Assembly (NCBI GenBank): GCA_964035545.1
Contig: CAXIUT010000228.1
Location: 1 to 20,883, forward strand
Length of the DNA stretch: 20,883 nucleotides
From: Bugula neritina
Taxonomy: Eukaryota; Animalia; Bryozoa
Direction: 5' to 3'
Under the pieces are notes generated by a model that worked only from the letters and a program-made list of their open reading frames with translations, searched no databases and was not told the origin of the DNA. Of the stretch, positions 142-20,200 are shown piece after piece (the stretch's first letter is position 1; the number at the start of each line of letters is the position of its first letter). Made by a program: the position numbers and the translations under genes.

Positions 142-1255
142 ATGGCTCGTTAGATTATCAAAAGGAATACTATTAATATATAACAAAATGAGTTAGTTCA
201 TTCTTTGTTGAATGTGATTCGTGGTCGAGAGAACAGTTTGATCTTTTTTTTAGAAATGGTTTCTCTTGAAACTTAAAAATACAATCCTACTCAGTATAAA
301 ACTTTTAAATAATAATTTATCACTAAACAAAAAAGTGCCACTCAAAATATCAAAACCATTATTTGGAAAATATCAAACTTTATCTCAACAAAGTATCTAT
401 TAGTATATGTAGTTTGATTAAATCATTTTGGAATAAGTTAAAAAATATCCTTAAAGTTGCCTTCTAGAGAATCAAAGTGATTTAAATAGTTGATATAGCT
501 GTTGAAAGGTTCTATTAACAAATATATAAAAATATAGATCTTTTTTATCAAACGAGTATGCCTATTAAAGAGCTTTTGTATATTTAGCAAATTTTACAGC
601 AAAGAGCTGTTGAAATAATATTAAGTGTAAAGAAGAGTAAAAGTAATAGTTTTAGTTGCAATAAAATAAGAAGTGAAACTATTCTTAAAAAGAAAAGTAA
701 TCAATAAAGAAATCATTCGGCTAATAAAATTAGATAAAAACAAATAACTGCTGTTGATGAATTAACTATTATCAAATAGTCAAATAGAAGTAAAAGAAAA
801 ATGAAAATAAAAAGTGGATAAGTAGATTACAAAAGGTATTATCAATTATACATAGATGTCAAACTTCATTAAATAGACTATAAGGCAAGTTAACTGATAT
901 TATGGAGAGTAAAATAGATTATCAGATTGATAGAAAGAAGACTCAGAGCTAGAATTAAAATATATTGTTTTAGTGTCTTTTTAATAGAAATATTAATAAC
1001 TTAAGAATAATTGGAAAATATCAATAGAATTGTAATTGCTTTATGGAGAAGATTAAAAAGTTGAAGGAAAAGTAAATTCGTCGAAATAAAGCTAAATTTA
1101 TGAAGAGATTGGTTGAAAGTGAGTGTAGATAGAACAGAGAGGTGAAGTAGAAGGAGACAAGTGGTAAGATATTGAGACAGAAAACTTAGAAGGGAAAGAA
1201 GGTTTTAATAAAGAAGTAGTAAATAAAAGCCAAGAAAATATCTACATCAAAATGA
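142..1255 (+). CDS. Hypothetical basic (K/R-rich) protein, 357 aa, 2 introns
   Basis: ATG at 142 and TGA at 1253-1255. The frame is open with TAR=Glu after removing 20-nt introns 393-412 and 836-855 (1074 nt = 358 codons). No domain recognised. Confidence 0.8.
393..412 (+). other. 20-nt spliceosomal intron
   Basis: gtatctattagtatatgtag; removal restores the frame; A at -6. Confidence 0.85.
836..855 (+). other. 20-nt spliceosomal intron
   Basis: gtattatcaattatacatag; removal restores the frame; A at -6. Confidence 0.85.
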
Positions 1256-1306
1256 TAATTTTTAAACTAATATCTTGTTATAATATTTACAATTGAATTC
1301 TGAAAG

Positions 1307-4300
1307 ATGAACCACGTTTTATAGTTGAATTCTAGACGGTATATAGTACGGCAGCAGCATCAAAAAATGATGCTTTTGACATTTCCTTCCTTGAAGTTAC
1401 TTCATAAACTATATCTCAATACTACCTTTTCTTGTATTAATAAACAAACTAAAGAGATTATGTCTATCTATCAAAATTAAATTACTATTATTAAAGCAGT
1501 AGTAAGTCCTTTGCAATTGGCTATTACTCAACAAACTTTTATTGATTGGCAAGCTAGTGGAGGAATACTCATGGAACATGATATCGTCCTCTATAGTCTT
1601 CATGGCATTGTTTTTTATAACAGAGCAAGCGATATTGAAAAGGCTTGGCAAGTGGAGGTGATTCAGGATATATAGGAAGTGAAAAGTAGTCCTGGAGATG
1701 AAGTTATTGCTATGAAAGTAAAATAACCCAATAATTCATTGTTTATTTGGAGGATAGCTTAGCCTTCAGTCAAACCACATCAATAGATAATCTTAACACA
1801 GCCGATAGTTCAATGGTAGTTCATTTATAATAATCTTTTAGCTATACTAACAGCATCATAGCTTCGTATATACATTTTAGGTTCTCAGCAGCAATTTAAC
1901 TTATATCATTTTTATTTGATAAATGCTCGTTCTTTTTGCTGGATAGATTATCCTCTGGTCGATAGGGAGCAAAGACTATCAGTGAATAACGTTATTTTGA
2001 TGTAGAGAAGAGCTATAGCTAATATAGTGGAGTTATACTAGTTGTAGAAGCGAGTATTGGAATCTTAGTGTTCTGTGATAGGGTCTATTTTATTAAGGTA
2101 CAAATCTGTGAATATGAAAAGAGTTATTGGTTGTTGGAGGGAAGAGGATCGGATTGGACTGGTATGTTAGACTAAGAATAGAGAGTTATTTACTTTTGAA
2201 ATGAACAGGAAGATGAAAATATACCGAGTGAAGGCCAATTAGTAGTGTTTGGGTGCTAATGTCAATGAAGTATATGTGAATGGTAATTTGTTGCTGGTTA
2301 AAGATAGAACTCGTTGGAAATATTATAAGATAAAAGCTGAGAAGACATATTAGTTGTTGGAGTAGCTGGATTGTTAAAAAGCTTTTATTGGTTCTTAAAA
2401 TAAGATATACTACTTGTATTAACAAGCTGTTTATATAAAAGAGGTGGGAGGGATGCGTGGTGATCCAATTGCATTCAAATATCCTGGTGTTTAGAAAATA
2501 CACTACTTGAATTCAACTAAATAGGCATGTTATATCATTGCTGGTATAAGATTTTTCAAAATAACAGATACTGCTGTAACATCAGTAGGTTTTGCTATCA
2601 AAAATGAGAAAGCTGAGTTAGTCTATATTGATCGATTGACTCAGACTTTAACTTATCGGATGGGATCTCAGAAGATGTTGTTAAAGTACCAGATCGGTGC
2701 AAAGGTGACAGTTGTTATGAGCAAGTCGAGTAGCAAAGATTTGGTGGCAGTGAAGGGCGGGAGATGGATATAGCAAGATGAGCAAGAATTTACATTAGGA
2801 ATGGGAGATAAAGTCCTAGCTACTTTTTATTTATCAAAGTTGTTAAAGATACTTGACAATGAAAACAAGTTATTCCAATATTCAATTCACAGTATAAGCG
2901 GAGACGGTCTTATTTTGGTTCTAAAGAACTATGTATTTTTTTTACAAGTGGTATAGGACGAGAGAGGATGTGAGATAGTATTGATAAAGAGAAGTAATAC
3001 AGTTTTATATCATCGTTTTAATCCTCATGCTCATGTAGTTAAATTAGTGGATTCATCGAATCTATCATTTTGGATTGGAAATAGAGTTATACAATTGGGT
3101 GGTAGAATCAATCCTCATGCTATTATCGATCCATACTTGCCTCCTTAAACCTTAATGGCTAAACAGCTAGAATTGAAAAGAGTTTTTCCACCACATCATC
3201 CGAGAATATTAGAATTGTTGATTTAAACTAATAATTTGACTTTGGTTTTGGAGTTGATAAAAGTTGTTAGAAAATGGTTTTTAAAGAAATAACATACTCT
3301 AGCTTAGCTACATAAAGATATTGGAATAGATTTTGTTTCTGATATTTTATGGAGTAATAGAGAAGAAGATCTAAGTCGATGGCCTTAGCAAAAAACTATC
3401 TAATAGTCATAATTGATGAAAACATTTGCAACTGAGATGATGGATAATTTTTAATAGATAAATTTGAAATAAAGAGGTCCATTCAGATTTGAAAGTATTC
3501 TTCAATCTCTTGCTTATTTTTTATCTAATTCTAGAAGTGTAGATTATTTTTCACAATCGACTCTTATTTTGGCCAAGAGTTCAATTATGAAAGGAAAAGC
3601 TTTGAATAGCATGCATATTGCTCAACTAATGCACTCTTTAAATAAATAAGAAGCAGCTCTTTAGTTAAAGCCTGAGAAAGTGACTTGGGAATGGATGAAG
3701 GAATATTCTATTCCTTTTTGGATTGGAAATAAAGAAATGCTAAGAAAGTGGATTTAGTAATTTGCTGGAGCTGAGTATCGTAGAAGTAAGGAACCTTTTG
3801 ATTGTTTGTTTTGGTATTTGTTGGTTGGAAAAAGATCTTTGGTTACTACACTTTTTAAAAATCATAAAATAGATTCAAAATAACACGATTCAATAGCTAA
3901 CTTTTTGACTAGGGACTTTACATAGGCAAAAAACCGTTCAGCTGCTATAAAAAATGCCTATGTTTTGATCGATAAGAAGAGATATTTACATGCTCTAGCT
4001 TTTTTTATTTTAGGTGAATCGATTGATGACTGTATGCGTTTCTGTACAGACAGATTGAAAGATATGAATCTGACTTATACGTTTATATTGTTTTTTAAAG
4101 ATGCTGACATAAGTTATTTGTTATCTGTAATGTAAAAAGGAGATATATGGATGAGACATATAAGATATAAGATAGCTGGAGAGCATATTAGAAGTTATAA
4201 TTGTCTTTTTTAGGAAAATGACCAATTAAATTGGAGTTATCAGCCTCCGTTGACTGGTTTCCATCCTGCAGCTATTTAATTTGCACAAAAAATAAGAAAT

Positions 4301-6604
4301 TCTGTTCCTGTTAGAAGATAACTATAGGCTCAAAATCAAATAAATCAATCAAGTAATGACATTTTTGATGATTTTTTTGGATCATCTTCTACCACAGTCG
4401 AATAAACTAAAATATAAAAGATATAACTCAAAGGTGATATTGATGAGTTGAAACCTCAAGCTGTTGGGTATTTTTTGAAGGAAGGAGTGCCTGTAATGGC
4501 TTTGGCTATTTAGGATTCTAACTAGGAAGCAAAGTAGGCTTATTCTTTTTAATTATACAAGTTAGGAGGAGAAGTTTAGGCTTCCATGGAGTCAGTGGTG
4601 ATTGGACTTGAAGATAAGTTAGCTATTTTTAAATGTTATAAAGCAAATAAAAAAATTAATTAAATAGTGAGTTTTATCTAGAAATAAATATAGAAGTTTA
4701 AATATAATTTAGGACATGTTCATTTAGTGCAAATAATTGAGACTAAGAAACATATATTGGGCTAGATATTACATTTTGGTTATTTTGCATAAAAAATAGT
4801 AATACTGTAGCAATAAAGATAAGATGAGTAATAGAAACCTAGTTCTTACAGCAAAGTGATTTAACAGTTGATAGTGTTATCAAAAGTGAGTAAGATATTG
4901 GTTTGTTTGATTTTATAAGATTTTTAAGACCTTCTTCAATGCATATAGGATTTAAGATAGCCTAATTTAAAAGTTAATGTTGATTTATGGTAAAGATTTA
5001 GGACACTTTATGATGATGTGGTATAGCATAAGAAAGCAAAACAGCTAAAACAAATGGATTATTTTTAACATGCTTTTATTTCTACTTATAGAGCTATCAA
5101 AAAAGAATAAATATATAGAATGGAACTTTAAATAACTTCATAGTAAGCTGCTATTTTGATAATTAAGATATGTGTTTTGACATATTTATCAAGAATAAGA
5201 TTCCCTGTACAATAAGAGTTAGTATAATTGAAAAATACTAGCTTAGAATATTTAAATAACTGGATCACTAGCTATAAATATACAAATATTGTTGACTAAT
5301 ATAGAATTCTGTTGAGAGAAGGCACTCAATCTAAATTAAAACTATCTGTATTAAATCATGTTTTTGATAAATATTTTATTCAGGTCTTTGATATTATGAC
5401 CATTGTTCATTCCGGATTCTTTTAACAACATTTTATATCTGCTCAATAAGATAAAATACATGAATTGCAAGCGATTTAGGTGTTTAGAAATAAACAAGAT
5501 GGATTGAAAAGTTTTATTATTAATAAACATTAAGGAAAAGGTCTTTAATGTATAGCTTTATTCAAAAGATTGATTAAAAAGTTTTAATTATGTGAGAATC
5601 TGGTTAAAAGATAAAGAACTAGAGATAGCTATGGATTATTAGCTTAAGATAGTGGGTATAACAATGTATCTCAAATAGACCCTATAGTTTATTTAAAAGC
5701 TAAAAACCCGCCTCCAATTGATTAAGCTTTAAATTGGATCATAAATAAAAGAAAGTATCTTAGTGAGAAAGATTTTCCTAGAGTTAATGCTAATTTTTCT
5801 GAGAAAGGGTATATGAGACAAATAGAAGCACCATATTTGGATTATAATTAACTTAATTCGATAGAATGCCATCCTTTTCTTCCTTTTTATCTCATAGGCG
5901 GAAAAGGTTTGATATAAGTTGGTCACATGAACAATCTTAAAAATTTTGATAGAGTTAAGTGTCCAGGTATGAGCTAAATAGTCAAATTGCATTCTAGTGG
6001 TCAGAGAGTAGGAGCTATAGATTCTTCAGGAAATTTAGGTTTATATAATTTTGATCCATCATTTCATAATAACTGTGTCTATTCTTTAAAGAAAAATTCA
6101 ATAATAGACTTTTGCTATCTCAAACCAAGTGTTCTAGCAACTATATCTCAATCGTCATTGCAAGTTATTGACACTTTGATTCATCCTAAAAGACAAATGC
6201 AATTCAGACAGGCATTCAATAAAGATCCAGTTGAAGTGACAGCAACAAAAGACAATAAAATAATAGTACTAAGAAAGAACTAGGTTTTGATTTATGACAT
6301 TCGAATGTAGAGGTTATAAGGTTCAAAAGATTTAAAAGGAAAGGGAAAATCTATTTATTTATAGGATAAGGTACTATATGTGGGAATGTCAGATTCAAAG
6401 GTGAAAGCTTTCGATGTTTTCAATGAAAATAACAACTACGAAACAATTCGAGTGGGATCATCAGGTATAAATAAAATTAATATAGATGATAAAGATCGAT
6501 AAAGTATTGATCAGTTGATAGGCTATGACAATATAATAATGGCGATGAGTAACGAAGGTTCTATTTACTATTTACCTCAATTGGGCAAAGATGCGTTCAA
6601 GTGA
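1307..6604 (+). CDS. RAV1: Rav1/DMXL (rabconnectin-3 alpha, RAVE complex)-like WD40 protein, ~1760 aa
   Basis: A single 5298-nt frame with no internal TGA. The Rav1p_C-like block at ~3180-4090 reads FPPHHPRILELL...TWEWMKEYSIPFW...LRKWIEEFAGAEY...PFDCLFWYLLVGK...ANFLTRDFTEAKNRSAAIKNAYVLIDKKRYLHALAFFILG, matching the DMXL motif AALKNAFSLLGKQRF..AAFFLL. C-terminal WD repeats include ECHPFLPFYL, VIDTLIHP and IYDIR. Probable 21-nt intron at 6465-6485. Confidence 0.9.
6465..6485 (+). other. Probable 21-nt (3n) intron
   Basis: gtataaataaaattaatatag fits the GTA...AYNTAG consensus. It is frame-neutral, so it cannot be proven from DNA alone. Confidence 0.6.
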
Positions 6605-6684
6605 TAAGAATTCTTTATAAAGCTATTTATGTTAGTTAATATATAAAGTATGATATAAGCTATAGATTTAATTATCAAATAAAG

Positions 6685-7291
6685 ATGACAAACGTGAATC
6701 ACAAAATAAACCAAGTAAAAATCATTCTATGAAGTACGAAGATAAAGTTAACAGTCTTTATAAACAAATATAAGGACTTGAACAATAGGCCAAAAACTAT
6801 CTACAAAAATCAAAAGAATCGAAGGGATCTGCTCGATAAATGTATAAGCAAAAGTGTATGATGGCTCTCAAAAAAAAGAAACAAATCGAACAACAAGCTA
6901 AAAATTATAATTCTCATCAAAATATGCTTCAGCAGGCAGCTTTCAATATCTAAAATGCTCAAAACCAAAAATAAATGGTAAAGTTTTTGTTATTTAGTAT
7001 GCAGGCCTTCAAACAGCAGTTTAGGCTCAGAAATAGGCGATCAAAGGAGTTGATGTGGACAAAATGTATGATATCCAAGATGAGATGATTGATATGAAGA
7101 TGCAGAGTGATATGATGAACGAAATGATGAACAGGAACTATGACATGGATGTCGATGAGGACTAGTTCTAAGATGAGTTTATGGAGTTTCAGAAGGAAGT
7201 AGCTATTGAGAAGAAGAAAAATCCTAATATTGGGAATATCAAAAAGGAACAGGTTCCTTCACAGTCTATCGACGATATTCTTAAAATGTGA
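6685..7291 (+). CDS. VPS60: Snf7-family ESCRT-III subunit, Vps60/CHMP5-like, 188 aa, 2 introns
   Basis: Reads YKQKCMMALKKKKQIEQQ...QQAAFNIENAQNQKEM...VDVDKMYDIQDEM...MNRNYDMDVDEDEFEDEF. Introns at 6715-6734 and 6978-6997; TGA at 7289-7291. The family call is firm; the subfamily is less so. Confidence 0.88.
6715..6734 (+). other. 20-nt intron with AAG acceptor
   Basis: gtaaaaatcattctatgaag contains an in-frame TGA. Removal joins ATG 6685 to the Snf7 frame. Confidence 0.8.
6978..6997 (+). other. 20-nt spliceosomal intron
   Basis: gtaaagtttttgttatttag; required to keep the Snf7 domain in frame. Confidence 0.92.
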
Positions 7292-7300
7292 TAGATATCA

Positions 7301-8278
7301 TCAACAACAGCTATAATATTTATTATCAAGCAAATTGCAACCTGATTCGATCTTTTGACTCTCTTAGAAAGTGGGAATAAAAGATTGCCAGCTTTGTATG
7401 GTTTAGTTTCCACTATTTCTGGTGGGCTAGGTCATAAAATTAATCCAATTCTGGATGATTCCTTTGGAGAAAGGATTGTATCCAGAAGGAAGATGCTTTA
7501 GATAGCTGATATTTCTTTTTCTCCAGTGTTCCCAAGTAGTAATTCCACTTGAAATGATTGCAGTATGATATATAAGAAGATATCCTGTGAAAAAGATAAA
7601 CCCAAGATCTAAGAGCATAAGAAGGAATATTGACCATGTAATGAGGTAATGAAGTTCTAGCTGAAGATAATCAAAATAGGAAGGTAATTGGTAAATAGAA
7701 ATGAAGGTAGAAATATTATTGATTGTCTGAAAGAAGAGAAAAAGATAAAAAGGTTTATGGTTATGACGACCTACACAGTTTCCTATCCAGAAACAGTGAT
7801 GATCAAACCTTTAAATGCACACTTGACATTTTCTACAATGTTTAGTTCGATAATCACAAGTTATTTTACATTTTTTGCAGTAATATTTATTAGGTTTTTT
7901 TGAACCTAATAGTCCATTCTAACTTTAATCATTTTATGGCTAAATTTCTTATTTCAGCTAAACTGATATAGTAATAGGAGTCGTATCTATTTTGTTGCAT
8001 TGAAGATAAACTTTAAGAGCTAAATAGTAAAAGAGAAATGATAATCCAATATTGCCAAAAGAACAAATCAAAGAGGTTTTACTAATCTATGAAGCAAAGT
8101 TTTATCCTTTTTCATAGTATTATTAAAGTATGCAGAGATAAGCGAAAAAGATTCCAACCATTGTAGTTGGTATAAAGCAAAAATAGAAACTTTTAGCTCC
8201 GTCATAAGCTTGTTGCTCGTGTAAAGTTAATATTTTTCGTAGTTGTTATGGTTGAGTTTAATGGTATTTATTTTCCAT
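7301..8278 (-). CDS. DHHC protein S-acyltransferase (palmitoyltransferase), 325 aa, intronless
   Basis: Reads [45 protein letters not shown], with 4 hydrophobic segments, a TTWE motif, [12 protein letters not shown] and C-terminal DNKYYSCC. Ends in TGA-TGA. Confidence 0.96.
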
Positions 8279-8287
8279 AATAACAAT

Positions 8288-8601
8288 TCAAAAGATAATT
8301 ATGAGTATTATAAGAACAATCATGAGGCAACAGAGTAGCCAGCAGGCACAAATTTGATTAATATCTAAATAGCTAAAATATTACCATGAGTTTATAGAAG
8401 TTATCCTATTTATTGATTGAGTTCTTTAAGTCTTCCAGTCGTTAAATCTACCTATTAGTCTAGTTGCCCTATCATCCTGTTTTGCCTATTAACTTCATTA
8501 TTAATATTTTGGCCTGTATGCTTCATTCTAGATGCAATTTAGTGTATTTATTCAATATGTTCGTCTTGGTCTTGTTGTAGTCGATGATGTCCGTATTGCA
8601 T
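8288..8601 (-). CDS. Minimal Qc-SNARE (syntaxin-6/8, Tlg1 or Bet1-like), 97 aa, 1 intron
   Basis: Reads QDQDEHIEEIHEIASRMKHTGQNINNEVNRQNRMIGQLDEEVDLTTGRL, with the 0-layer Q. C-terminal TM segment is ICACWLLCCLMIVLIILIIIF. Intron at 8365-8384. Confidence 0.9.
8365..8384 (-). other. 20-nt spliceosomal intron
   Basis: gtaatattttagctatttag on the minus strand; removal joins the SNARE motif to the TM anchor. Confidence 0.9.
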
Positions 8602-8634
8602 TTAATATTTGATTATTTAGATTAGTAGTAAATG

Positions 8635-8677
8635 ATTATCAGATAGTAAGTTATTATCAGATAGTAAGTTATTATCA
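8635..8677. repeat. 18-bp tandem repeat, 2.4 copies, overlapping a stop codon
   Basis: ATTATCAGATAGTAAGTT at 8635-8652 and 8653-8670, plus a partial copy at 8671-8677. Confidence 0.93.
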
Positions 8678-9514
8678 AATGAAGAAAGAACGGCTTATTT
8701 TTTGTTGTATTTGGGAGGCTTTTCTTTGGGCATGATTGACTTATCGAAGAAAACCTTTAAATCTTTCTTTTCTTGCTAATTTAAGAGTAGAATTATGATT
8801 TAAGTCATAAAAATGTTAGTAGTTGACATTTGATCGATATTTCATTGTATTTATATTTGTTTTTTCAAGATTAATGAATTTCTCTTATTGTTCTTAAAGA
8901 AGCTATTTTCTAATAAGCTATCTTTCTTATTTAAGATATCCTTTTCTCAATGTCTATTTTAAATTCAATGTTTTTTATAATTCTTATTGTTTCTTTGAAT
9001 AATTATTGATTGTTTTATTATTATTGTTAAATTGTTATTTGAATTATTCTTCATTTATTTCTTTAAGGTCAGAATAGCTATCTTATTTTTCATAACTTTT
9101 TATCACAGAATCTGGTCGATATTTTCTATGTTTTTTATTACTGAACTTTTTAGTCTTTATTTTAGGTGATTATTCACCCATATTTATTGCTTTATCGATT
9201 ACAGGAGATGATTAAGGTAAGTTATTTATCTTTCTGTATTATTTCATATCATCTTGAACCTTTTTTATCTAATTTTTGACATAGTTTGTTGAATAAGAAG
9301 TTGCTGAATAATTGCTTTAGAGACTTTAACTGCAAAAACTTTAATTTTAAGAATTATTTTATTTATTGAATGAATTATCAACAGCATTGTTTAATAATTA
9401 TTCGATAACTTTTTGTCTTGCTAGCTCTTCATATAGATTAGTATCTAAATAGGATATTTATTCTTTTTTATTTTTAATTTGTTCTTCTAATCCATAAAGT
9501 TCATAGTTTTACAT
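8675..9514 (-). CDS. Hypothetical low-complexity/coiled-coil protein, 279 aa
   Basis: An 840-nt frame from ATG (9514) to TGA (8675) with no internal TGA. It begins ATG-TAA (M-E-N-Y-E-L-Y-G-L-E-E-Q). Confidence 0.8.
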
Positions 9515-9572
9515 TGTTAATAAATAACAGACGATTTATCAATACCCTATCTTATATTAAAATTATTCACGA
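9515..9572. promoter_or_regulatory. Putative bidirectional promoter (58 bp)
   Basis: AT-rich spacer between two divergent ATGs. Positional inference only. Confidence 0.4.
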
Positions 9573-10987
9573 ATGAAGTGTAGTTAGTCTCCTCCTGATA
9601 ATAAGCAAAATTAGACTACAATAAGAACTAATAGTAAGTATGAACCACTTCGTAAACCTCATTTTAGGTTGAGAGAGCTAAAAAACTCTGGAACCAATAG
9701 AATAGATATATCATCATCTCCAAAGAGAACAAATGAGATAGTAACTCACGTTAGTATGGCAAATCAAACGATGAGAACAAGAGATAAAAAGATGAATAAT
9801 ACTACTAATAACTTTTATAGCAATTTATCTAAAATTGTAAAGGTAGGGTCGCCTTAGAGATAGGAGAGAAGTTCAATGAGAAAAACCTTTTTCAATAAAA
9901 GAAATAATCATGAAAGTAGTCCTTAGAAATCGACTCCTTCGAACTCACTTATTTTTAATAAAACAAGCGTTAATTTTCATAGACAAGATATCTTCAAGAA
10001 TGAGAACAATAATAACTATCTCAATAAATATAAAATTATCAAATAGTTAGGAAAGGGATGCTTTAGCACTGTTTTTCTAGCTAATAAACAAAATAACATC
10101 AATAATAGATTTAGCAAGTCTCCTCTTTAATTTAATCCTTAAGTAGATGAAGATGGAAATCCTAATTTAACAGAGATGATCAATCAAAGAAACGATATTC
10201 TTCCTCGTTTAAGTCAGGAACAAAGTTTGAAGAATAGTTAGACTACAAATGAATCATAATCTAATTTGGTGGCTATTAAGGTGTACTAAAAGTTTAAAAT
10301 GAACAAAGATCCTAGTAAATTTAAAAATATCAAAAAATAGATAAACATAATGCAAAATTTGAATAACTAAGGTGTGATAAAGTTATACTAGAGTGTATAA
10401 ACTTTGACGAAAATAAGTTTAGTTGTAGAATATGGAGGTGAAGAGTCTCTGCTTGAATATGTAAAACACAACTATCCTTTATCTATTGAGACAGTAAAAA
10501 GTATAAGTTATCAATTGATAAAAGCTATTTCTTATTTGCATGATAAAAATATTGTTCACAGAGATATTAAACTTCAAAATGTATTGATTAATAAAGACAA
10601 TATCAAACTCATTGATTTCGGTTTTAGTTGTCTAAGTATCTTTCTACCTATATAGCCCATAAACAACAGAAGTTAAGTGCTATTTGTGGAACTCCTAACT
10701 ATATGGCTCCAGAAGTGATCAGTAAGAAAGAATATATTGGTGAGCAAACTGATATTTGGTCTTATGGAGTTGTTGTCTTCGCACTAGCATAGGGACGACA
10801 TCCTTTCAAAGCTGAAAGTTATAGTTAACTGTAAAGACTAGTTAATAAAGGTAAATATTAGTTTAGAAAAACTTGGTAGCAACCATTTAAAGACTTTCTC
10901 AATCGAATACTAAGAGTAAAGGCATCAGAAAGACCAACTTCTCACGAAATAATGCAGATGCGTTGGTTGAAATAAATCCAACAATGA
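9573..10987 (+). CDS. Ser/Thr protein kinase, CAMK group (MARK/AMPK-like), 464 aa, 1 intron
   Basis: Motifs present: [58 protein letters not shown] and ERPT. Intron at 10636-10655; TGA at 10985-10987. Confidence 0.96.
10636..10655 (+). other. 20-nt spliceosomal intron
   Basis: gtatctttctacctatatag; required to link DFG to the APE motif in frame. Confidence 0.95.
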
Positions 10988-11014
10988 TTAATAATATTCA
11001 TTTGTTATAAAAAG

Positions 11015-11563
11015 ATGTAATCCGTAAAATCTTTATTCAAATGGGACATGCCAATCATATCTAAGCCACCAAAGAAAAAGTTCATCGAAAAGATGCCTTT
11101 TTTGGTGGATCTTGATCATTGTAATAGATTTAGACCTCTATTTGATGGAAATACATTTCGGGAGGAAGTTTTTGATACTGAAGGATAAATTATTTCATTT
11201 ATTGATCAAAAAGCAAAGAAAGAATATGAGAGTTATTCTGATAATAATAAGTATGTTACTTATTGTATTGGAACTGTTGGAATTATGTTTGCTGCTTTTT
11301 GTCATAAAGTCAAGTTTATCAGTCGTTTATTAGGATAGAAATCATGGAAAATGTTTAGTTTAAGGTTACTTTTTGTTGGCATTCCTTACTATTATATTGA
11401 GAAAGTAATGCCTTAAATATAAGAAGAGCAGATTTCTTTACTTTATTCTAAAGTGAAAGATAAGTATAGACAATTTAAATTATCTGGGGATTTAATAGCA
11501 TTAAACAAAGATATAGAACTCTAAGATTTTATTCTAAAATAAGGAAATTAAGAGCTAATTTGA
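11015..11563 (+). CDS. Hypothetical small membrane protein, 182 aa
   Basis: aaagATG context and a 549-nt open frame to TGA. Hydrophobic segments are YVTYCIGTVGIMFAAFC and MFSLRLLFVGIPYYYI. Confidence 0.78.
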
Positions 11564-11608
11564 TTTCGATATGATAACTTTTATAGAATATTATATTTAA
11601 CTATCGAT

Positions 11609-14523
11609 ATGTAGTGGGAATTCAGGAAGTCTCTCTAGTCATTTGAAGGATACAAAAGAACTGTTTCAATTAGAAACTAAATAGAAAATGGAGATTAAAG
11701 TGCACTTGGCATTGTGGTAAGAGAAATTTAGTTGATTCTTAATGATAAAAATTAAAAAATTTTACCTAAAGTTTTGGCAGTGAGAGTATGATAGTTAATA
11801 TGTAGTTTGCAAGAGATATTATGATATTGGGACAGGAAGAAATAGTTAAAAGAATTTAAAAGTTGGTCCCTCAGCTGACTAAAATATGTTCTCATGATAT
11901 GACTTCTCCAGATCCTGATCGAGGATAAACTTTCTTTCAAGATCATCCAGGTTCATTTCTATTCATACAGCTTATTTAAAGGCAAGCAATGAAGATGAAA
12001 AGAAAGAGATTGAAACTCTTGGATCAACATATCTGATATTAAGTTTAGAATCGATTTTTCACTGGGCTAAATGGATTCCTTTTGATTCTAATGGGCAATA
12101 AAGTATTTATGTTAAAGCTTATCAAAGTTTGATTGATCGAGGAGTTACTTTTCCTTCATCTTTTCACTACTACAAACAATCTGATACAGAAAAGTATTTC
12201 ACTTTTTATCTAGATTTAAAAATACTTATAAAATGTAATTTTTTACTGATAGTTATGAATCAGCATATTCTGAAAATTCTTCATCAGTTCATCAATCAAG
12301 GATAAGTGAAGATGAGAGACAAAGTCGATCTGGATGGGAGAAGAAAAGTAAAGCTTAGGATTCAAAAGGGTTTCATACAAGTTAAGAATATACTGGTTAA
12401 GGTAGATTTCTAAAAACTGTTCCTGAGATGATGGAGTATCTAGGTGATCTTAGAAAGAATAAAAGTAGAAAAACTGGTCCTTTAAAGTAAATTTATAAGA
12501 CAGTTCAAGATATGTATGAAATTAGAGGTTAGCTAGGTAAACTTCCAAAAGATGAAAAAAGATGGGCATAAAATTATATCATAAACTATAGTCTTTTTAG
12601 TACTAATATGATAGGTTATGATGAGCTGCTTCAACGTAGTCTTTCTCAAGAAGTTGTTATATAGTAAGGAATTCAAGAGGAAGATATCACAATAAACAAA
12701 TAAGCTAAGCAGACTCCAATTAAATTTCATCAATTAAACCCTCAAAAATCTATAAAAGACTCAAGCAAGATTCAAAGGAATGAACTAGGAGGTTCTCGAG
12801 CAGATTCATAAATAAAAAAACAAGAGTATTAGTTGAAAGTCAAATTGAATTCATTAGCTGTAGAAGTCGAGTAAAAAGATAACCAGATTGCAATTATAAA
12901 ATCAAATCATGAAAAGTAGAAGAATAGAATAATTGAAGATTACGAGACAAGGATAGAGTTGATAAAGATAGAGGTGAAGAAGGGACAAAATGATCGAGGG
13001 TCATTTTAGAAATAGTTGTAAAAAGAAAATAATAAACTAAGGCATAGAGTAGCTAGTCTTTAATAATAACTTAATAGCAATAATTATAATACCAATAGAT
13101 AGAGAGATTTAGAGTCAGAAAGAAATCATCTTTTGACTAAAGTCAAGAGACTATAGCTTGAAAATTAAAAATTACAACAAATTAAGGTTGTTAATAGAAA
13201 TGCTGATAAATAAGTTGTTAATTTATAAGGCGTTATCAAAGAAAAACAAAGTAGTTTGGAAATGTTGAAAGCTGAGTTAAAAAAATCAGAAAAAATATGT
13301 CAAAATTATCAAGATGAAGCAACTCTCTACAAATCATAACTGATAAATTAAAGAGCTAAGCATTAACAGAAGATGAATACTTTAGCTAAATCTAAAGGAG
13401 GTTTAGATCAGTAAACTAAAGCATTGAAATAGAAAGTTTTGGAATATCGAAAAACACTAGATATCAAGGAAATATAAACTTTGAATTTAAGAGAATAACT
13501 CAAACGATATCAATCTAAGGTTAGAGATTTTAACTAGAAAAAATCTATAGCAGGAGTTGATACTTATCGAAATGAACATTTGATTAAAAGCAAAGCAGGA
13601 CAGTATCAGTCACCAGCTAGATTACAAAGTCCTATGCAGTAATTATAACCTTTTCGAGGCAATGTATATAATAATTAAAAATAACTAAAGTTTAATAACT
13701 ATGAGGACTTATATCTAGAGTTGAAGCCTAATAATAAGGAATTATTTATCAGATTATGTAGATGTGGATTTAAAAGAAAGGATATTTTATTGAAAGAAAA
13801 TGAGTTGTAGATAGGAATTATTAGTGATGTGATATCAGAGGGAAAACTTAAATTTGTATTACACTTTACTAATACTTCTTAAAAACAGGTTTAAAACCTT
13901 AAAATAGACTTCAATATGGCCAACTCATACATAAGTACTCTTGACTATTAAATTTAAAATAAGTATAATATTATTATAATTTAGATATATTTTTTGCATT
14001 CAACCTCAAGAACAAGAAAAGGTTATAGTTGTTGTTAGTAATAAGTAGCCTCCTTTTCTCAAATAAAGAGCTATCCTTGAAGTGTCTTTTGAGTATTATA
14101 TATTTTATATAGAAAACATGGCGCTATGTATAGTAGTAATATCTTTTTACCTTTTCTTATTCCTAAATTTTATGACTTCTACAAGCCCAAAACAATAAAA
14201 CTTCCATAAAAGAATAAAAATCCAAGATAGATGATCCAATTTCGTTATAGTAAAAAGATGATACCGAAACCAACTAGCTTGAGATCTTTTTTCGAATAGA
14301 TCTAATAAATATCATCAAATGTATAAATTATTTTACTTAGAGATTCTAAGTTGAGGCATATCATCGTTTGACAGATCTTTCTGTCAGGTTGCTTTTAACT
14401 TTAGCTCCTGATACTTAGGCTTTGCAATTGGATGTTATGGCATTGAGGGAGAATATAAATTAGAAACAGAGATATGTATTTTAATAGTTGATTAGTTTCA
14501 TGGAAATTGCCTTTAGAAGATGA
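11609..14523 (+). CDS. Putative trafficking adaptor: VHS-like N-terminus + coiled coil + alpha-adaptin-appendage-like C-terminus, 930 aa, 6 introns
   Basis: Open after removing 11786-11805, 11951-11970, 12194-12213, 13963-13984, 14093-14112 and 14321-14340 (2793 nt). VHS-like end: LESIFHWAKW...YVKAYQSLIDRGVTFP. Ear-like region: FIRLC...ILLKENELEIGIISD...KFVLHFTNTS...IQPQEQEKV...IFLPFLIPKFY. The gene model is firmer than the domain calls. Confidence 0.75.
11786..11805 (+). other. 20-nt spliceosomal intron
   Basis: gtatgatagttaatatgtag; contains an in-frame TGA. Confidence 0.88.
11951..11970 (+). other. 20-nt intron, GTT donor / CAG acceptor
   Basis: gttcatttctattcatacag; restores the frame; A at -6. 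Confidence 0.82.
12194..12213 (+). other. 20-nt spliceosomal intron
   Basis: gtatttcactttttatctag; restores the frame. Confidence 0.85.
13963..13984 (+). other. 22-nt spliceosomal intron
   Basis: gtataatattattataatttag; restores the frame; A at -6. Confidence 0.8.
14093..14112 (+). other. 20-nt spliceosomal intron
   Basis: gtattatatattttatatag; restores the frame. Confidence 0.85.
14321..14340 (+). other. 20-nt spliceosomal intron
   Basis: gtataaattattttacttag; restores the frame to TGA 14521. Confidence 0.85.
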
Positions 14524-14592
14524 TTTAAATATTTGTATTAACTTTTATTTTAAATATATTATAGAACTAAAAATGATAGAAAATATACAATT

Positions 14593-15559
14593 TCAAATAT
14601 CTCCTTCGGGCAAGGCTTTTATGGAAGATAATTTACATCCTTTTTGATAAAAACTACTTTTAATGTTTTTCTTCAATTAAGATATTTAATGAGTGCTTTT
14701 CATTGTTTTTTTGCTATTTAAAGTTGGTAATCTTGAATTTGGTATTTTTTCATAAACTTTTTTTGGATTTTTAACTTCTTGTCGATCTTTATTAATTTTA
14801 TACATAGTTGTGAGGACACTGATCGAATTATTTTTTGGAGATTTGAATCCACTGATTAGAATTTTTTATGCATTATATCCATAGTTGTATTGTTGATTTT
14901 TTTAAGGTTTTTTTTTTTTTTACAAGTAAGTTTGGAGGTTTTTCATCTTGCATTGTTTATAATGATTCAATTCTTTATTTTCTTTGTCTATGAAAATTCT
15001 AAATTTTAGTTGTGCTAAAATCTTTTTGAATTTATCCTTCGAGAGGAATAAGTCCTTTTCCAGTGGAAAATCGATAATGTTTGGAATTATTAACACTATG
15101 TGATGTTCTTTATATTCCTAAAGATGATACAATGGAAAGTATAGAATCTCTTTTCTACTTGATTTGATATTCTTGTTTACACTAGCCTATAGCTTATCTG
15201 ATGCATAGATAATCATTGATTACCCTTTGAGGTTCTTACTCTTGATTTATAGTAATATCGTTAACATAGACATTTGGAGATATACTGGTATTAATGGTCA
15301 TTTATAATTCTCTAATAACAAGATTTAGATGTTTTCGGAAGTTATTTTATTCAATAACTTTTATTTAAGTATCTACTTTATCAACTACGTCATCAATGAT
15401 GTTATTAACAATTTTGAAGGCACTGGGAAAGGGGTATCGATTAAGAAAGACGTGATTTTAGTTGAGAAGAGGTCCTGTATGAGTAAGAGTGCTTTTTCTT
15501 TGTTTGACAAGAGTGTTTACTTTTCTGAGCGATACAAGATTTTATGTGTTTCTTTTCAT
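14593..15559 (-). CDS. Hypothetical protein (~321 aa) with an apparent 1-nt frameshift at an A14 run
   Basis: ATG at 15559. Read as given, the frame ends at TGA 14750-14752 (269 aa). Dropping one base of the homopolymer at 14908-14921 gives a frame running to TGA 14593-14595. The 3' end is therefore uncertain. Confidence 0.65.
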
Positions 15560-15600
15560 TTTTCCAAATAAATGTTCTAAAAAGTAAAAAATAATATTAA
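15560..15600. promoter_or_regulatory. Putative bidirectional promoter (41 bp)
   Basis: AT-rich spacer between two divergent ATGs. Positional inference only. Confidence 0.35.
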
Positions 15601-16749
15601 ATGCATAATAAAAGCTATCTAACTTATCACCCATAAGTAATCAAAAAAGTAACTGAAACATCAATAAATAAATCACTGAAAATGCCCTAAATGAATATCT
15701 AGTAAATGGCTGCTTAACTAATCCACAAATAGCGTATGAAAGTATCTGAACTAAATATTCAAATCAGTGCTTATAGAGTTCAAGTATAACTATAAGAAAA
15801 CAATAAAATTGATCATGGTCCATACATTTAAAGTATTGAACGCGAAATCAGTAATATTCACAATGAGTAAGTTTATGTTAACTAACAAATAGCAAATTGT
15901 CAGCAAGTGGAAAATCAAGTTACACCTATGTAGTATTATTTATGGAAAAAGAAACAAAGAATTAATACCTATGATGCATCTATCAGCTAGCTGTGCAAGG
16001 AAATATAATTAGAAAGAGAAGAACTGGAAAATGCTATTGAGGACTACAAGCATGAAGGGTAAGAAATGATTGGATAAATATAGAGATTGGAAGAAAGATT
16101 AGGACAGTTAAACAGTTCATCACCAGATGCTAAAGGATCTAGGAAAAATAGTTTAGAATAAACCTATGAGTAGTTGAATGCCTAGAATCGTAAATTAAAG
16201 GAAGAGTATTCTAATTTAAGTAATAATCATGACTTTTTGCAGTAGAACAAAGATATTGTTGTTATGAAGATCAGCGATAATATAAAATCTATTGAATCTA
16301 CTTTGAAGAATTACTTTTAGGGCGAAAAGAGTAAGTTAGTTAAAGAGTTTAAAAATATTCAATTTTAATCAAAAAATTACTAAATATCTCCTATAAATTC
16401 ATAGGAACAAAAATACAAGATAGATCCTCTTCTACATGACTATGCTTTCAAATTGAAATAATTATATAATGCAGCTCCTGAAGAAATACAGAAAGTTATC
16501 GTCAATATAATGCAACCTTTGGTTTGGTAAAAGTTTTATTGGAAAGATTTTCTAGAAGTGGAGCCTAAAAGTGAACAAATTTACACATAATATCGAAAAC
16601 TCTAAGCGGAATACATGTAGAACTAGTAAAAAACATAAAAATTGCAGCAAATGATAAAAGACACAAGTAATTAGTTGGCTAATGAGCAAATGCGATCAAC
16701 TGACTTAACATATAACATAAAGAAGTTGAGAAAGCAGGTTAAGAAGTGA
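15601..16749 (+). CDS. Hypothetical coiled-coil protein, 382 aa, intronless
   Basis: A 1149-nt frame with no internal TGA and E/K/L heptad-like composition. Ends TGA-TAT-TGA. Confidence 0.83.
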
Positions 16750-16767
16750 TATTGATATTGTATGAAT

Positions 16768-17232
16768 TCATTTATCAAAAGAGTGTTAGTCGATATTATA
16801 TAGCATGATATCTAACTTGGAATTTCTTTGGAGTTGTTCTTGCGCATATTTTTCATATGATCCCAGAAGTTCTTACTAGTTGAAGGAGGCATTAGCAGGT
16901 ATTTTCAATTTATATTCAAGATATTTCTTTAAGAACAATGCCTCTCTGACTTTTTATTATTCTTAGAGTTAATGCTAATTGATCGAGTTCTGATAAAAGT
17001 TGTATTTGGCGTAGAAGTATCCCCAAACCACAAATGTTAGCATCACTGTCTTCTATATCCAGCTTACAAAACTGAGTTGGATATTGCGGGAACGAATGTA
17101 AGTGTGTAAAGCAAAGAAGGATCCTAAAGTGAGACCCCATTTGATAGATGTAAAAGTATAAGGATACCTGAAGATATATTTCCCCTGAAGGTAATCTAAT
17201 TTTTTAATTGAGAGTCCATCTTATTCTGACAT
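16768..17232 (-). CDS. Two-TM protein, possibly COX20-like, 154 aa
   Basis: A 465-nt open frame reading RYPYTFTSIKWGLTLGSFFALHTYIRSRNIQLSF...MLTFVVWGYFYAKYNFY, followed by a charged helix. The CDS is solid; the COX20 resemblance is tentative. Confidence 0.75.
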
Positions 17233-17294
17233 CTGATCAGAAAATATATGTTAGTATGTAAATGACTTGAAATATTTCTTTATTGATAAAAATC
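17233..17294. promoter_or_regulatory. Putative bidirectional promoter (62 bp)
   Basis: AT-rich spacer between two divergent ATGs. Positional inference only. Confidence 0.35.
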
Positions 17295-20200
17295 ATGTTT
17301 GGACCAGCTCAAAATGTGTCAAATCAACGTGGATATCCTGTACCTCAGGCAGCTCCAGCTAACAACTTCCCTCAACCTTACTACTAACAGGTTAATTACG
17401 CTTAGAATCCAAGCCATTAAATGGTTGGAACAATGATTAATCGATCCTAATCTCAGTATCAACAGGGTTATCCTGGTAACATGCCCAATCAGCCTTCATT
17501 GATTCAACCTCCAGCTTTAAATGCAGAAGAAAATATAAACACGAATTCTCAGTTTATACCACAGGGAAATGGAAATAATAATTAACAGAGTTAGTTCTAG
17601 GGATATCAGAATCAAGAAGGAGGATGGAATGAGGAAATGGCAGCTGTTTTTTGGTAGCAGAGATGTATGACAATACTTGACCGTTTTCAATGGTTTTTTT
17701 AGAGGTTTTAAATATTAAAGGAGTAGTATGGAGGATTGAGTGACTAAATGCAAAAGATGGATTCTTAAGAATAATGGCATCAATTTCAAATGCATCATGA
17801 CTAGTTTCACGAAAAGTAGTTCTTTATTAATGAAGAATATTATAGATGGAACAGTAGTTGGCAGCTGTTTTAAATGAAAATTAACAACTAATGGAACAAA
17901 AAATGTCTCATGATAATTAAAATGTTTGGTAACAGCGATATCAGGAACTATTGGGCAAGTAATATATCTATTTACTTAGTTTTAAATCATTGCAAGATGA
18001 TATGGCACATATTGAAGCCAATGGAGCAAGTAAAGAACCAGGATCTGGATCTGGAGTACCTCCCGAACAATATCAAAACCTAGAAGATCAATTTACATAA
18101 TTGGAGTATCAATATGGGTAAGTAGTGAAGGAGTTGCAAAAACAGCAAAGTGTAGATTACCAAGAGCAATATTAAATGCAGATCAATGACTATCGTCTTT
18201 AAATATAAAGTTTTAAGGTTAAATTTTAAAATTTACATCGATAAAACTAGTAATTACAGCAAATAATGGTCGATCTTTAGAAACAGAATCAATTTTTATC
18301 TGAACAAGGAGATCAGAGATATCAGGAATTAGATAGGATAATTCAACAAAAATAGATTGAAATCGAACAGTTACAAAGAGATTTTAGATAAAAAAGTGGT
18401 AATCAGGAAATGGTAAAGCAATATGAGATGGCTTTAAATTAGAGAAACAAGTAAAATGAGGAATTAAGACAGGTTTTGATGAATCGGGATACGTAGTGGG
18501 TAAGTGAAAGGATGAATATGCAGACTAATGAAGAGTAATCTCGTAGATTTATGCAAGCTTAATTTGAAAAACAAATTGTTCTCAAAGAATAAAATATAAA
18601 ATAAATGGAAAAAACTATCCTTGGTTTACAGAATAGTAGTAAAGTGAATGCTGATAGTAGTCAAAAAATATAAAATCTATAGAAGAAATTAAGTCATTTG
18701 GGGCACTAAGTAGTAGCTTTGAACTAAAGTTTAAAGAAGAAAAATCAATAATTAGTTTAATTAAGAGGAGTTAGCTATTAAGTTTAAAAATTAAGATAAA
18801 ATCAAGAAGTCTATGGAAAAATAGCCTAGGAAAAGGAAAGATTAGTTGATAATTTAAAGAAAAAGCAAAGTTAGTTAGATGGAATGCATAAGTAGATAGA
18901 ATAGTTAACTATGAGAGTTCAGTAGGTTACCAATAAACGTCAATAGTATTCTACTCGCAACTTGATGGCTTAAATATAAGATTTGAATGATCAGATCAGA
19001 AGAAACTAGGGAGAGATTAGTCGAATTAAAAGTATAATATAGTTGAAAGAAGAGTATTGTCTTCAATTATAATAAGATCTAAAAAAATCTAATTAAAAAT
19101 ATATCATAGCCGAACAAACTTTATCTTTCTAGCGTGGAAATTGGAGATAAAAAGAGTTAAAGTTAACCAGTAATACCTCATAGCATGAGAAAAGAATTAA
19201 AAATTTAGATTATTAGTTTAATCTACAATTGAAAGATAACCTTGAAAGAGAGATTAGTTCATTAAGAAAACAAAAAGGAGAGAGATAATAAGTGATTCGT
19301 ACAATGGAAGAAACTTAAATAATATTAAGATCTAAGATGGCAGTTTTATAGAAGCAGAAAGGCAATTTTGATCGTGATATAAATTTGATGAAGAATAAAT
19401 AGCACTAATTGGAAAGAATAAATGCTGAGAAAATGAAAAAGATTAAAGAATTATAAATTGCTTGTCTCTACAAGTAAGAAGACCTTGAAAACTATAAACA
19501 ACTTAATCTAAATATGAGTAGTGATGTTAGTAGAAGTCGTGGAGAAGTTGAAGAGCTGAATTGTTTAATTGGAGATAGAAATAGAGTTATTGAAGATTTG
19601 CAGAAACAAATTAAAGAACAGATTGGTAGAAACGAAGTAACTGACAGAATTAAAATAGAAAATAGCAAGTTGAAACTATCATTAAGGACTCTTGAAGAAG
19701 AGCTAGAGAAGATGAAATTACATAATTAATCTAAGAAACAGAGCAAAGTTAGTCATAAAAGCTAATTTTAGAAATAATAGCGTTCGATGATAAATAGTTT
19801 ACAGCAGTAGAACCAATACTTGAAGCAATAGTTGGCAAAATCATTATAAAAAATGATTCCTACTTCTCAGAGAGAGATGCCAGTATCTCAGAAGGAGGTT
19901 ACTATGCGTGGATTTAATGATTATAAATCAAGTAGTAATGCTACAGTTGATTTAAACAAACGTTTGAACGAATTCAATAGTAAGTTACAGATGACTATTG
20001 GGAAGAATGATTTGCAGCATTCTCAATCTCAAAAATTGATATCTTTTTGGGAGAATGAAAGAAAAGATTTAATCTAAAAATATGAAGGATAAATTAGAGA
20101 ATTAAAAGGATAACTCAAAACGAAAACTTAACATTCACAGGTAACTTAGAATTTTAGAGGATAAAGTCAGAGGAGACAGACTAGAATGACTCTAGAAGAT

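Follow-up and report, generated by a model that had tools for sequence, protein, structure and literature searches.

Very small introns of almost constant length have been described in heterotrich ciliates. Those of Blepharisma are 15 nucleotides (nt) long in ~79% and 16 nt long in 10.5% of cases (PMC13685798, PMC9004412), and the 15-nt form, GTAAWWTTTATWTAG, carries a conserved A at position 10, which is position -6 counted from the 3' end (PMC13685798) and was read by the authors as the branch adenosine (PMC9004412). The introns of Paramecium have a median of 24-25 nt with a broader range of lengths, and their length affects splicing efficiency (PMC12862383). Intron lengths that are multiples of three are, in general, avoided outside heterotrichs (PMC13685798). 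In the present study we analysed a stretch of 20,883 bases (the window; contig CAXIUT010000228.1 of the Bugula neritina assembly GCA_964035545.1), whose reading frames are interrupted by introns of almost uniformly 20 nt with an A at -6, a length that fits this avoidance. A first-pass annotation of the window had pointed out these introns and had compared them with heterotrich introns carrying a fixed A at -6 and with Paramecium introns of more variable length; both comparisons agree with the published data (PMC13685798, PMC12862383).

A full-text literature search for 20-nt ciliate introns found nothing. For the peritrichs Campanella sinica, Epistylis hentscheli and Vorticella campanula, a 2026 paper describes "similarly narrow" intron lengths, and its main text states neither a modal length nor a consensus nor a branch position for this group (PMC13685798).

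Results

A single length spike at 20 nt in 195 kb of ciliate DNA

Genome-wide statistics were taken from 195 kb of the same ciliate, consisting of the window and contigs C10-C25. In a count free of gene models, GTA...AG pairs with AY at -6/-5 were collected at every spacing. The motif GTA-N11-AY-NN-AG occurred 131 times at length 20 compared with 40.2 ± 6.5 times at the other lengths from 10 to 300 (z = 14.1), and the next-highest length was 253 with 58 matches, as expected among 290 tests. No excess was detected at 19, 21, 22 and 23 nt (31, 33, 31 and 30 matches, respectively), nor at 15 or 16 nt after satellite removal. An excess of GTA..TAG pairs at length 16 was discarded, being due to one 29-nt satellite in L007. 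The satellite forms a 2.2-kb array of ~76 copies of the 29-nt unit (L007:5310-7533, contig C11) and adjoins an internal telomere tract at 5249-5309.

For the composition of the excess 20-mers, twelve control lengths from the same frame class were averaged and subtracted. The excess at the donor fell on GTA (+95), with GTT, GTC and GTG at ~0, which gives A at +3 in ~100%. At -6 it was +117 for A, -2 for C, +1.5 for G and -12 for T, so that A makes up ~100% of the excess 20-mers (~100-117). T accounted for 76% at -5, and the acceptor base at -3 was T in 63%, A in 20% and C in 15% with G at ~0, corresponding to TAG, AAG and CAG. When GTA..AG candidates were instead selected for bridging two reading frames, 52 were found at length 20 versus 15-26 at the other lengths from 11 to 35 nt that share its frame class, and 88% of these 52 had A at -6, a base not used in their selection, versus a background of ~35%. 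All three phases are used among the 20-nt candidates. The intron density is ~0.6 per kb of DNA, one length comprises ~85-100% of the recognisable introns, and no tandem arrays of 20-nt introns were found in the sample. A sharp genome-wide mode at 20 nt had been named in the first-pass annotation as support for its reading; it was found among the motif matches in the 195 kb, with A at -6 far above the AT-rich background.

Introns of the window

Fourteen introns were recovered in the window (Table 1): twelve measure 20 nt, and the two others 21 and 22 nt. Each of the 14 begins with GT, ends with AG and carries A at -6 followed by a pyrimidine at -5; in ten of the twelve 20-mers the base at -7 is T, and the acceptor is AAG twice and CAG once. 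Intron interiors have a guanine-plus-cytosine (GC) content of 19% compared with 27% in the flanking exons. The twelve 20-mers, the 22-mer and the frame-neutral 21-mer at 17959-17979 had already been counted in the first-pass annotation, and its counts of the signals at -6, -5 and -7 and of the AAG and CAG acceptors proved exact. It had also proposed a second frame-neutral 21-mer, which corresponds to either 4493-4513 or 6465-6485, both in a gene of 1,766 codons; the two are candidates only and are not among the 14. This gene (1307-6604) is one open frame with no frame-restoring intron, and it has no nucleotide-level counterpart in the syntenic relative described below; the other genes have about one intron per few hundred bases.

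Table 1. Introns recovered in the window, with the evidence for each (L041, syntenic relative; L025, L026 and L027, further relatives)
Position	Strand	Intron	Phase	Gene	Evidence
393-412	+	20 nt, GTATCTATTAGTATATGTAG	2	first gene	links frame 0 with frame 2; no more than three GT..AG options span the junction; coding scores switch
836-855	+	20 nt, GTATTATCAATTATACATAG	2	first gene	joins frame 2 to frame 1; coding scores switch; sole candidate at the junction that fits the consensus
6715-6734	+	20 nt, AAG acceptor		Snf7-like gene, 10 codons past ATG	20 nt in L041 (GTA..A(-6)..CAG); ATG and flanks kept
6978-6997	+	20 nt	0	Snf7-like gene	20 nt in L041; gapless alignment, interior diverged, flanks kept
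8365-8384	-	20 nt, GTAATATTTTAGCTATTTAG		minus-strand gene	20 nt in L041 (GTACTCTTGTATTTATGAAG), same site and strand
10636-10655	+	20 nt	1	protein kinase gene, between DFG and APE	homology changes frame; 20 nt in L025, L026, L027 and L041
11786-11805	+	20 nt	0	adaptor-like gene 11609-14523	bridges two frames; 20 nt in L041
11951-11970	+	20 nt, GTT donor, CAG acceptor			sole donor bridging the frames; canonical GTA...TAG 20-mer in L041
12194-12213	+	20 nt	2		bridges frames (91 open codons upstream, 621 downstream); 20 nt in L041
13963-13984	+	22 nt, GTATAATATTATTATAATTTAG			20 nt in L041; both exon flanks kept
14093-14112	+	20 nt			20 nt in L041; interior identity 0.18; flanks kept, coding-like
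14321-14340	+	20 nt			20 nt in L041, GTC donor, A at -6
17816-17835	+	20 nt, AAG acceptor		coiled-coil gene	20 nt in L041; coding score of 17836-18105 favours frame 1
17959-17979	+	21 nt, frame-neutral, GTAATATATCTATTTACTTAG			20 nt in L041 (GTA..A(-6)..CAG), flanks kept; removal of 20 nt needed there for the frame

In the kinase gene, the DFG and APE motifs lie in different frames and the variant spliced by 20 nt scored best against homologues. The conserved exon flanks of the 22-mer indicate that the adaptor-like gene continues past 14080. Where one species has a donor other than GTA, namely GTT at 11951 in the window and GTC at the site of 14321 in the relative, the other species has GTA at the same site.

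The window contains 16 motif matches at length 20 compared with ~4.3 expected from the measured background, and 11 of the 16 are introns listed in Table 1; the twelfth 20-mer, with its GTT donor, is not matched by the motif. The other five (10831, 14163 on the minus strand, 1072, 4799 and 12154 on the minus strand) are false or unsupported. The kinase homology passes through 10831-10850 in one frame, and 1072-1091, 4799-4818 and 12154-12173 (-) have no frame support. The candidates 14163-14182 (-) and 16968-16987 are coding-conserved or without GT..AG in the relative, coding conservation applying to the former. An intron at 18106-18125 was ruled out by the coding score that favours 17816-17835.

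Conservation in a syntenic relative

A relative, L041 (NCBI GCA_020049755.1), is syntenic with positions 6663-18114 of the window at 65-75% nucleotide identity. The two share their gene order for 11.5 kb or more, starting with the Snf7-like gene and ending with the coiled-coil gene. The same relative is present in several independent public data sets (L041, L042, L043 and L044, from NCBI GCA_020049755.1 and the Logan sets DRR424543, SRR26992862 and SRR30541747).

For 12 introns of the window an intron stands at the same site in this relative, and it is 20 nt long in 12/12. The window 22-mer and 21-mer both match 20-mers there and are therefore real introns that gained 1-2 bases. A base-by-base comparison of nine pairs of the same length found positions 1-2, 15 and 19-20 unchanged in 9/9, while positions 4-14 show 33% identity versus ~70% in the exon flanks. 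Judged by this base composition, an interior identity of 33% is saturation. No intron gain or loss between the window and the relative was found. The motif spike at length 20 recurs in relatives, with 16 matches versus 4.6 ± 2.3 in L041 and 13 versus 4.5 ± 2.3 in L038.

The kinase-site intron across further relatives

Using the exon upstream of the kinase intron as query, 41 orthologous fragments were collected from genome and metagenome assemblies. The fragments represent read-through of gene callers into the intron. In ~22 of them, DFGFS-x-L is followed by S, five residues and Q or a stop, and they therefore contain a 20-nt intron (GT, 15 nt, then CAG or TAG). The fifth read-through residue is always I, M or T, hence position 15 is A in these relatives as well. 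At the DNA level, 20-mers were read at this site in L025 (GTACCTTTTTTCCTATTCAG, from a genome of 52% GC), L026, L027 and L041. In all, about 30 further relatives have 20 nt at the kinase site, a few have 22-23 nt and none has fewer than 20. A wastewater contig of a related ciliate (L040) holds an intronless orthologue, whose junction coincides precisely with the A|CC that was predicted. Metagenomes, among them those of wastewater, contain further relatives (L025, L026, L039 and L040).

The elements are real, conserved intervening sequences: they interrupt frames, keep their site and length, evolve freely in their interiors and can be precisely absent. The view that they are introns, as proposed at first sight of the window, is supported by the orthologous sites in the syntenic relative, by the kinase-site relatives and by the intronless orthologue.

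Dozens of entries of the public protein collection (P0006, P0008, P0089 and P0151-P0184) are "proteins" that consist of gene-caller fragments ending at TAA or TAG and running into the 20-nt intron. Since dozens of database fragments run into the intron in this way, standard pipelines mis-annotate genomes of this clade.

Introns of other sizes

The off-size introns are all longer than 20 nt, being 21, 22 and probably 23 nt, and introns shorter than 20 nt were not seen in the window, in L041 or in the kinase-site relatives. A subclade has 22 nt at the kinase site, read directly in L039 and deduced for P0169, P0171, P0179 and P0184; a 23-nt kinase intron is probable in P0082. In the 22-nt subclade the conserved A stays at position 15, which is then -8, and in the orthologues of the P0179 type this A is the only one in the 3' half of the intron. 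In the 21- and 22-mers of the window it is the distance to the 3' end that is kept, with A at -6 and therefore at position 16 or 17. Because the extra bases lie on either side of the A, neither its 5' nor its 3' distance is strictly fixed.

Genetic code and origin of the DNA

TGA is the only codon that closes long frames in the window, and TAA and TAG are frequent inside them. In the kinase gene (10260-10987), the TAG at 10338 is aligned with the invariant alphaC glutamate (Glu) in 162 alignments (high-scoring segment pairs), close orthologues have E or D opposite TAA and TAG of the window, and the related wastewater contig L040 has TAG at the Glu position of the APE motif. Compared with the syntenic relative, TAA codons of the window stand opposite GAA 24 times, TAA 9, TAG 9, GAG 2, CAA 1 and CAG 1, and TAG codons opposite GAA 10 times, TAG 6, GAG 4 and TAA 2. 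The reverse pairing, GAA or GAG opposite TAA or TAG, also occurs, while CAA and CAG pair almost solely among themselves. From this codon pairing, TAA, TAG, GAA and GAG form one synonymous family. The kinase alignments, the APE motif and the pairing together uphold the earlier reading of TAA and TAG as Glu. This code has been reported for Peritrichia, with a single origin there (PMC10553269), and so the organism is not a heterotrich, in line with the first-pass annotation, which had called it probably none. It appears to be an oligohymenophorean with the peritrich code; the assignment to Peritrichia would rest on the code and on the relatives in wastewater metagenomes. A transfer RNA (tRNA) gene with anticodon CUA, which reads UAG, was located at L006:6787-6858 and fits the reassignment of TAG.

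The window (contig C237 of the 216-Mb assembly) begins with C4A2 repeats at positions 1-105 and ends with G4T2 repeats at 20795-20883; with telomeres at both ends, it is a complete ciliate macronuclear chromosome of 20.9 kb. The same telomeres occur on most small contigs of the assembly, and the large contigs carry animal-type U2, SF1, Slu7 and Prp18 genes. The ciliate is therefore a passenger in an animal genome assembly, in which its genome is only partly present. Internal telomere tracts occur in several small contigs (C10, C11, C14 and C15), for example near 9.7, 11.0 and 19.6 kb of C10, and these contigs look like several ciliate chromosomes fused end to end by the assembler. At L010:8553-9135, adjoining a telomere, lie three tandem tRNA-like genes of 102-114 nt, whose acceptor and D arms are of class II and whose anticodon loop is followed by an insert; they were not called by ARAGORN and, from this arrangement, probably contain tRNA introns.

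Searches for splicing components were made with the Rfam U2 model, two U2 sequence patterns and the Pfam families SF1-HH, Slu7 and Prp18, and gave matches on the large host contigs only. Rfam scans of the ciliate loci analysed returned tRNAs only.

Discussion

We consider it probable that these elements are ordinary GT-AG (U2-type) spliceosomal introns of a ciliate with the peritrich code, held at a minimal size specific to the lineage. Their signals, namely GTA at the donor, HAG at the acceptor and a single conserved A, are those of the major spliceosome. Such an intron consists of a near-invariant GTA, eleven unconstrained AT-rich bases, A15 (usually within T-A-T), two variable bases and H-A-G, with A15 as the presumed branch point. 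The distance from the 5' splice site to this A (15 nt) and that from the A to the 3' end (6 nt) may each lie at a lower bound set by the spliceosome. Additions of 1-3 nt occur before or after the A and are tolerated, and introns would be driven down onto the two lower bounds, which gives 20 nt. Retention of such an intron shifts the reading frame, since three does not divide 20. That the elements are removed from RNA, that A15 serves as branch point and that a minimal length is the mechanism is what we infer from the sequences.

Several points weigh against this interpretation. The search of public runs gave no RNA run with sequence of the window, and four public low-coverage DNA runs cross the introns unspliced, without joints. 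A15 is a presumed branch point, deduced from its conservation and from the heterotrich parallel. For the introns at 393-412 and 836-855 the support consists of reading frames and frame-specific coding scores. The statistics are blind to introns without the GTA..A..AG pattern and to very long ones, so the statement that almost all introns are 20 nt holds for this intron type only. Searches for ciliate small nuclear RNA and splicing-factor genes found none in the partial ciliate assembly, where absences are uninformative because it is partial. Moreover, a minimal length is inseparable on these data from an optimum that is bounded on both sides, such as the soft one reported for Paramecium bursaria (PMC12862383).

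Under a strict ruler, the spliceosome or a bridging factor would measure fixed distances from 5' splice site to branch point and from branch point to 3' splice site, so that only introns of 20 nt would be spliced efficiently, with selection against both longer and shorter ones. In its favour, the lengths peak at 20 nt alone and have no detectable excess at 19, 21, 22 or 23 nt, 20 nt is kept in 12/12 orthologues despite saturated interiors, and in Paramecium bursaria splicing efficiency drops on either side of 23-26 nt (PMC12862383), which shows that two-sided optima exist in ciliates with short introns. However, orthologous introns have been retained at 21, 22 and probably 23 nt, in one case throughout an entire subclade, the A of the off-size introns is constant to neither end, and every deviation is towards greater length, as a one-sided limit predicts. 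The ruler-like spliceosome proposed in the first-pass annotation accordingly is supported as regards the single 20-nt spike and the near-invariant A, and meets contrary evidence as regards fixed two-sided distances, since orthologues switch between 20, 21, 22 and probably 23 nt. We regard a strict ruler as possible but rather unlikely, and a minimal-length limit explains the observed lengths at least as well.

It is also conceivable, and in our view improbable, that the A at -6 belongs to an extended 3' splice-site motif (A-Y-N-H-A-G) which is read by a protein, with branching at another site or at As of varying position. Such a motif would suit the low information content of the neighbouring bases, which do not resemble UACUAAC, the very short distance of 6 nt from branch point to 3' end, and the A at -8 in the 22-nt subclade. 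Yet every lariat requires an A, with no conservation at any other position, A15 is the sole A of the 3' half in several 22-nt orthologues of the P0179 type, and the 15-nt introns of heterotrichs share an A at -6 that is read as the branch adenosine (PMC13685798, PMC9004412).

That the 20-mers are not spliced at all but represent programmed frameshifts or bypasses, remnants of DNA elimination or assembly artefacts is very improbable. Such a reading can appeal to the lack of RNA data showing their removal, but GTA donors and HAG acceptors are spliceosomal signals, all three phases occur, and the elements are present in independent assemblies and in the reads of other runs. The free evolution of their interiors would be incompatible with a bypass signal, the intronless orthologue in L040 corresponds to the spliced product, and the DNA is telomeric macronuclear DNA, for which elimination is already past. 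A chance pattern in AT-rich sequence can point to the motif matches of the window, of which roughly one in four is false (~4.3 expected, five false or unsupported ones found), and to the motif-matching 21- and 22-mers, which have no excess across 195 kb. It is refuted by the controls, namely z = 14, reached at no length but 20, the 88% of blind candidates that have A at -6 versus ~35% background, and conservation at orthologous sites.

Near-fixed tiny introns in heterotrichs (15 nt) and short variable ones in Paramecium are already known. New here are the 20-nt class with A15, its orthologous conservation across a clade of 29-52% GC, deviations that are only longer, and a 6-nt 3' module in common with heterotrichs. 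Tentatively, and with more doubt than for the minimal-length interpretation itself, the peritrich-code clade (29-52% GC) may possess a spliceosome with two hard lower limits, 15 nt between 5' splice site and branch A and 6 nt between this A and the 3' end, of which heterotrichs would share the second and have 10 nt for the first; nearly every intron would then be pinned at 20 nt and its length would be part of the splicing signal. If this is true, a comparison of heterotrichs with peritrich-code ciliates would reveal the spliceosome component that sets the minimal distance from 5' splice site to branch point.

The lower limit of intron size is an open mechanistic question, for which the 15-nt introns of heterotrichs have been the main natural example so far. 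The present introns add an independent second case, whose fixed size is another one (20 nt) and whose A has the same 6-nt spacing to the 3' end, which points to the segment from 5' splice site to branch point as the part that differs between the lineages. Orthologues that stay at exactly 20 nt with scrambled interiors demonstrate cleanly, and in nature, that selection acts on nothing but intron length. In practical terms, gene finders, read aligners and metagenome callers that assume a larger minimum intron will mis-annotate such genomes.

Among other systems with small introns, the nucleomorph of Bigelowiella natans has hundreds of GT-AG 'pygmy' introns of 18-21 nt, within a range of 3-4 nt around 19. 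It is the reduced nucleus of an endosymbiont in an unrelated chlorarachniophyte lineage, and its intron lengths are slightly wider than those found here. Paramecium belongs to the same ciliate class, and its introns are likewise AT-rich, of GT-AG type and with multiples of three disfavoured; however, they range from roughly 20 to 35 nt, the middle half falling within 23-26 nt, whereas a single length dominates here. Russell and co-workers in 1994 reportedly placed about 20 nt at the lower end of the Paramecium range. The peritrichs Campanella sinica, Epistylis hentscheli and Vorticella campanula share their genetic code with the ciliate studied here (PMC10553269). The tiny introns of heterotrichs (Stentor, Blepharisma, Fabrea and Condylostoma; 15-16 nt) resemble those of the window in being near-fixed and ultra-short, with a GTA donor and A at -6, and their 3' module T-A-T-W-T-A-G is the same as that found here (T-A-T-N-T-A-G). 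Unlike heterotrichs, the present host reads TAR as Glu and has a higher intron density, and its intron length of 20 nt is not a multiple of three, whereas 15 nt is. The five bases by which its introns exceed those of heterotrichs are unconstrained and lie all between the donor and the A, which are 15 nt apart here and 10 nt apart there.

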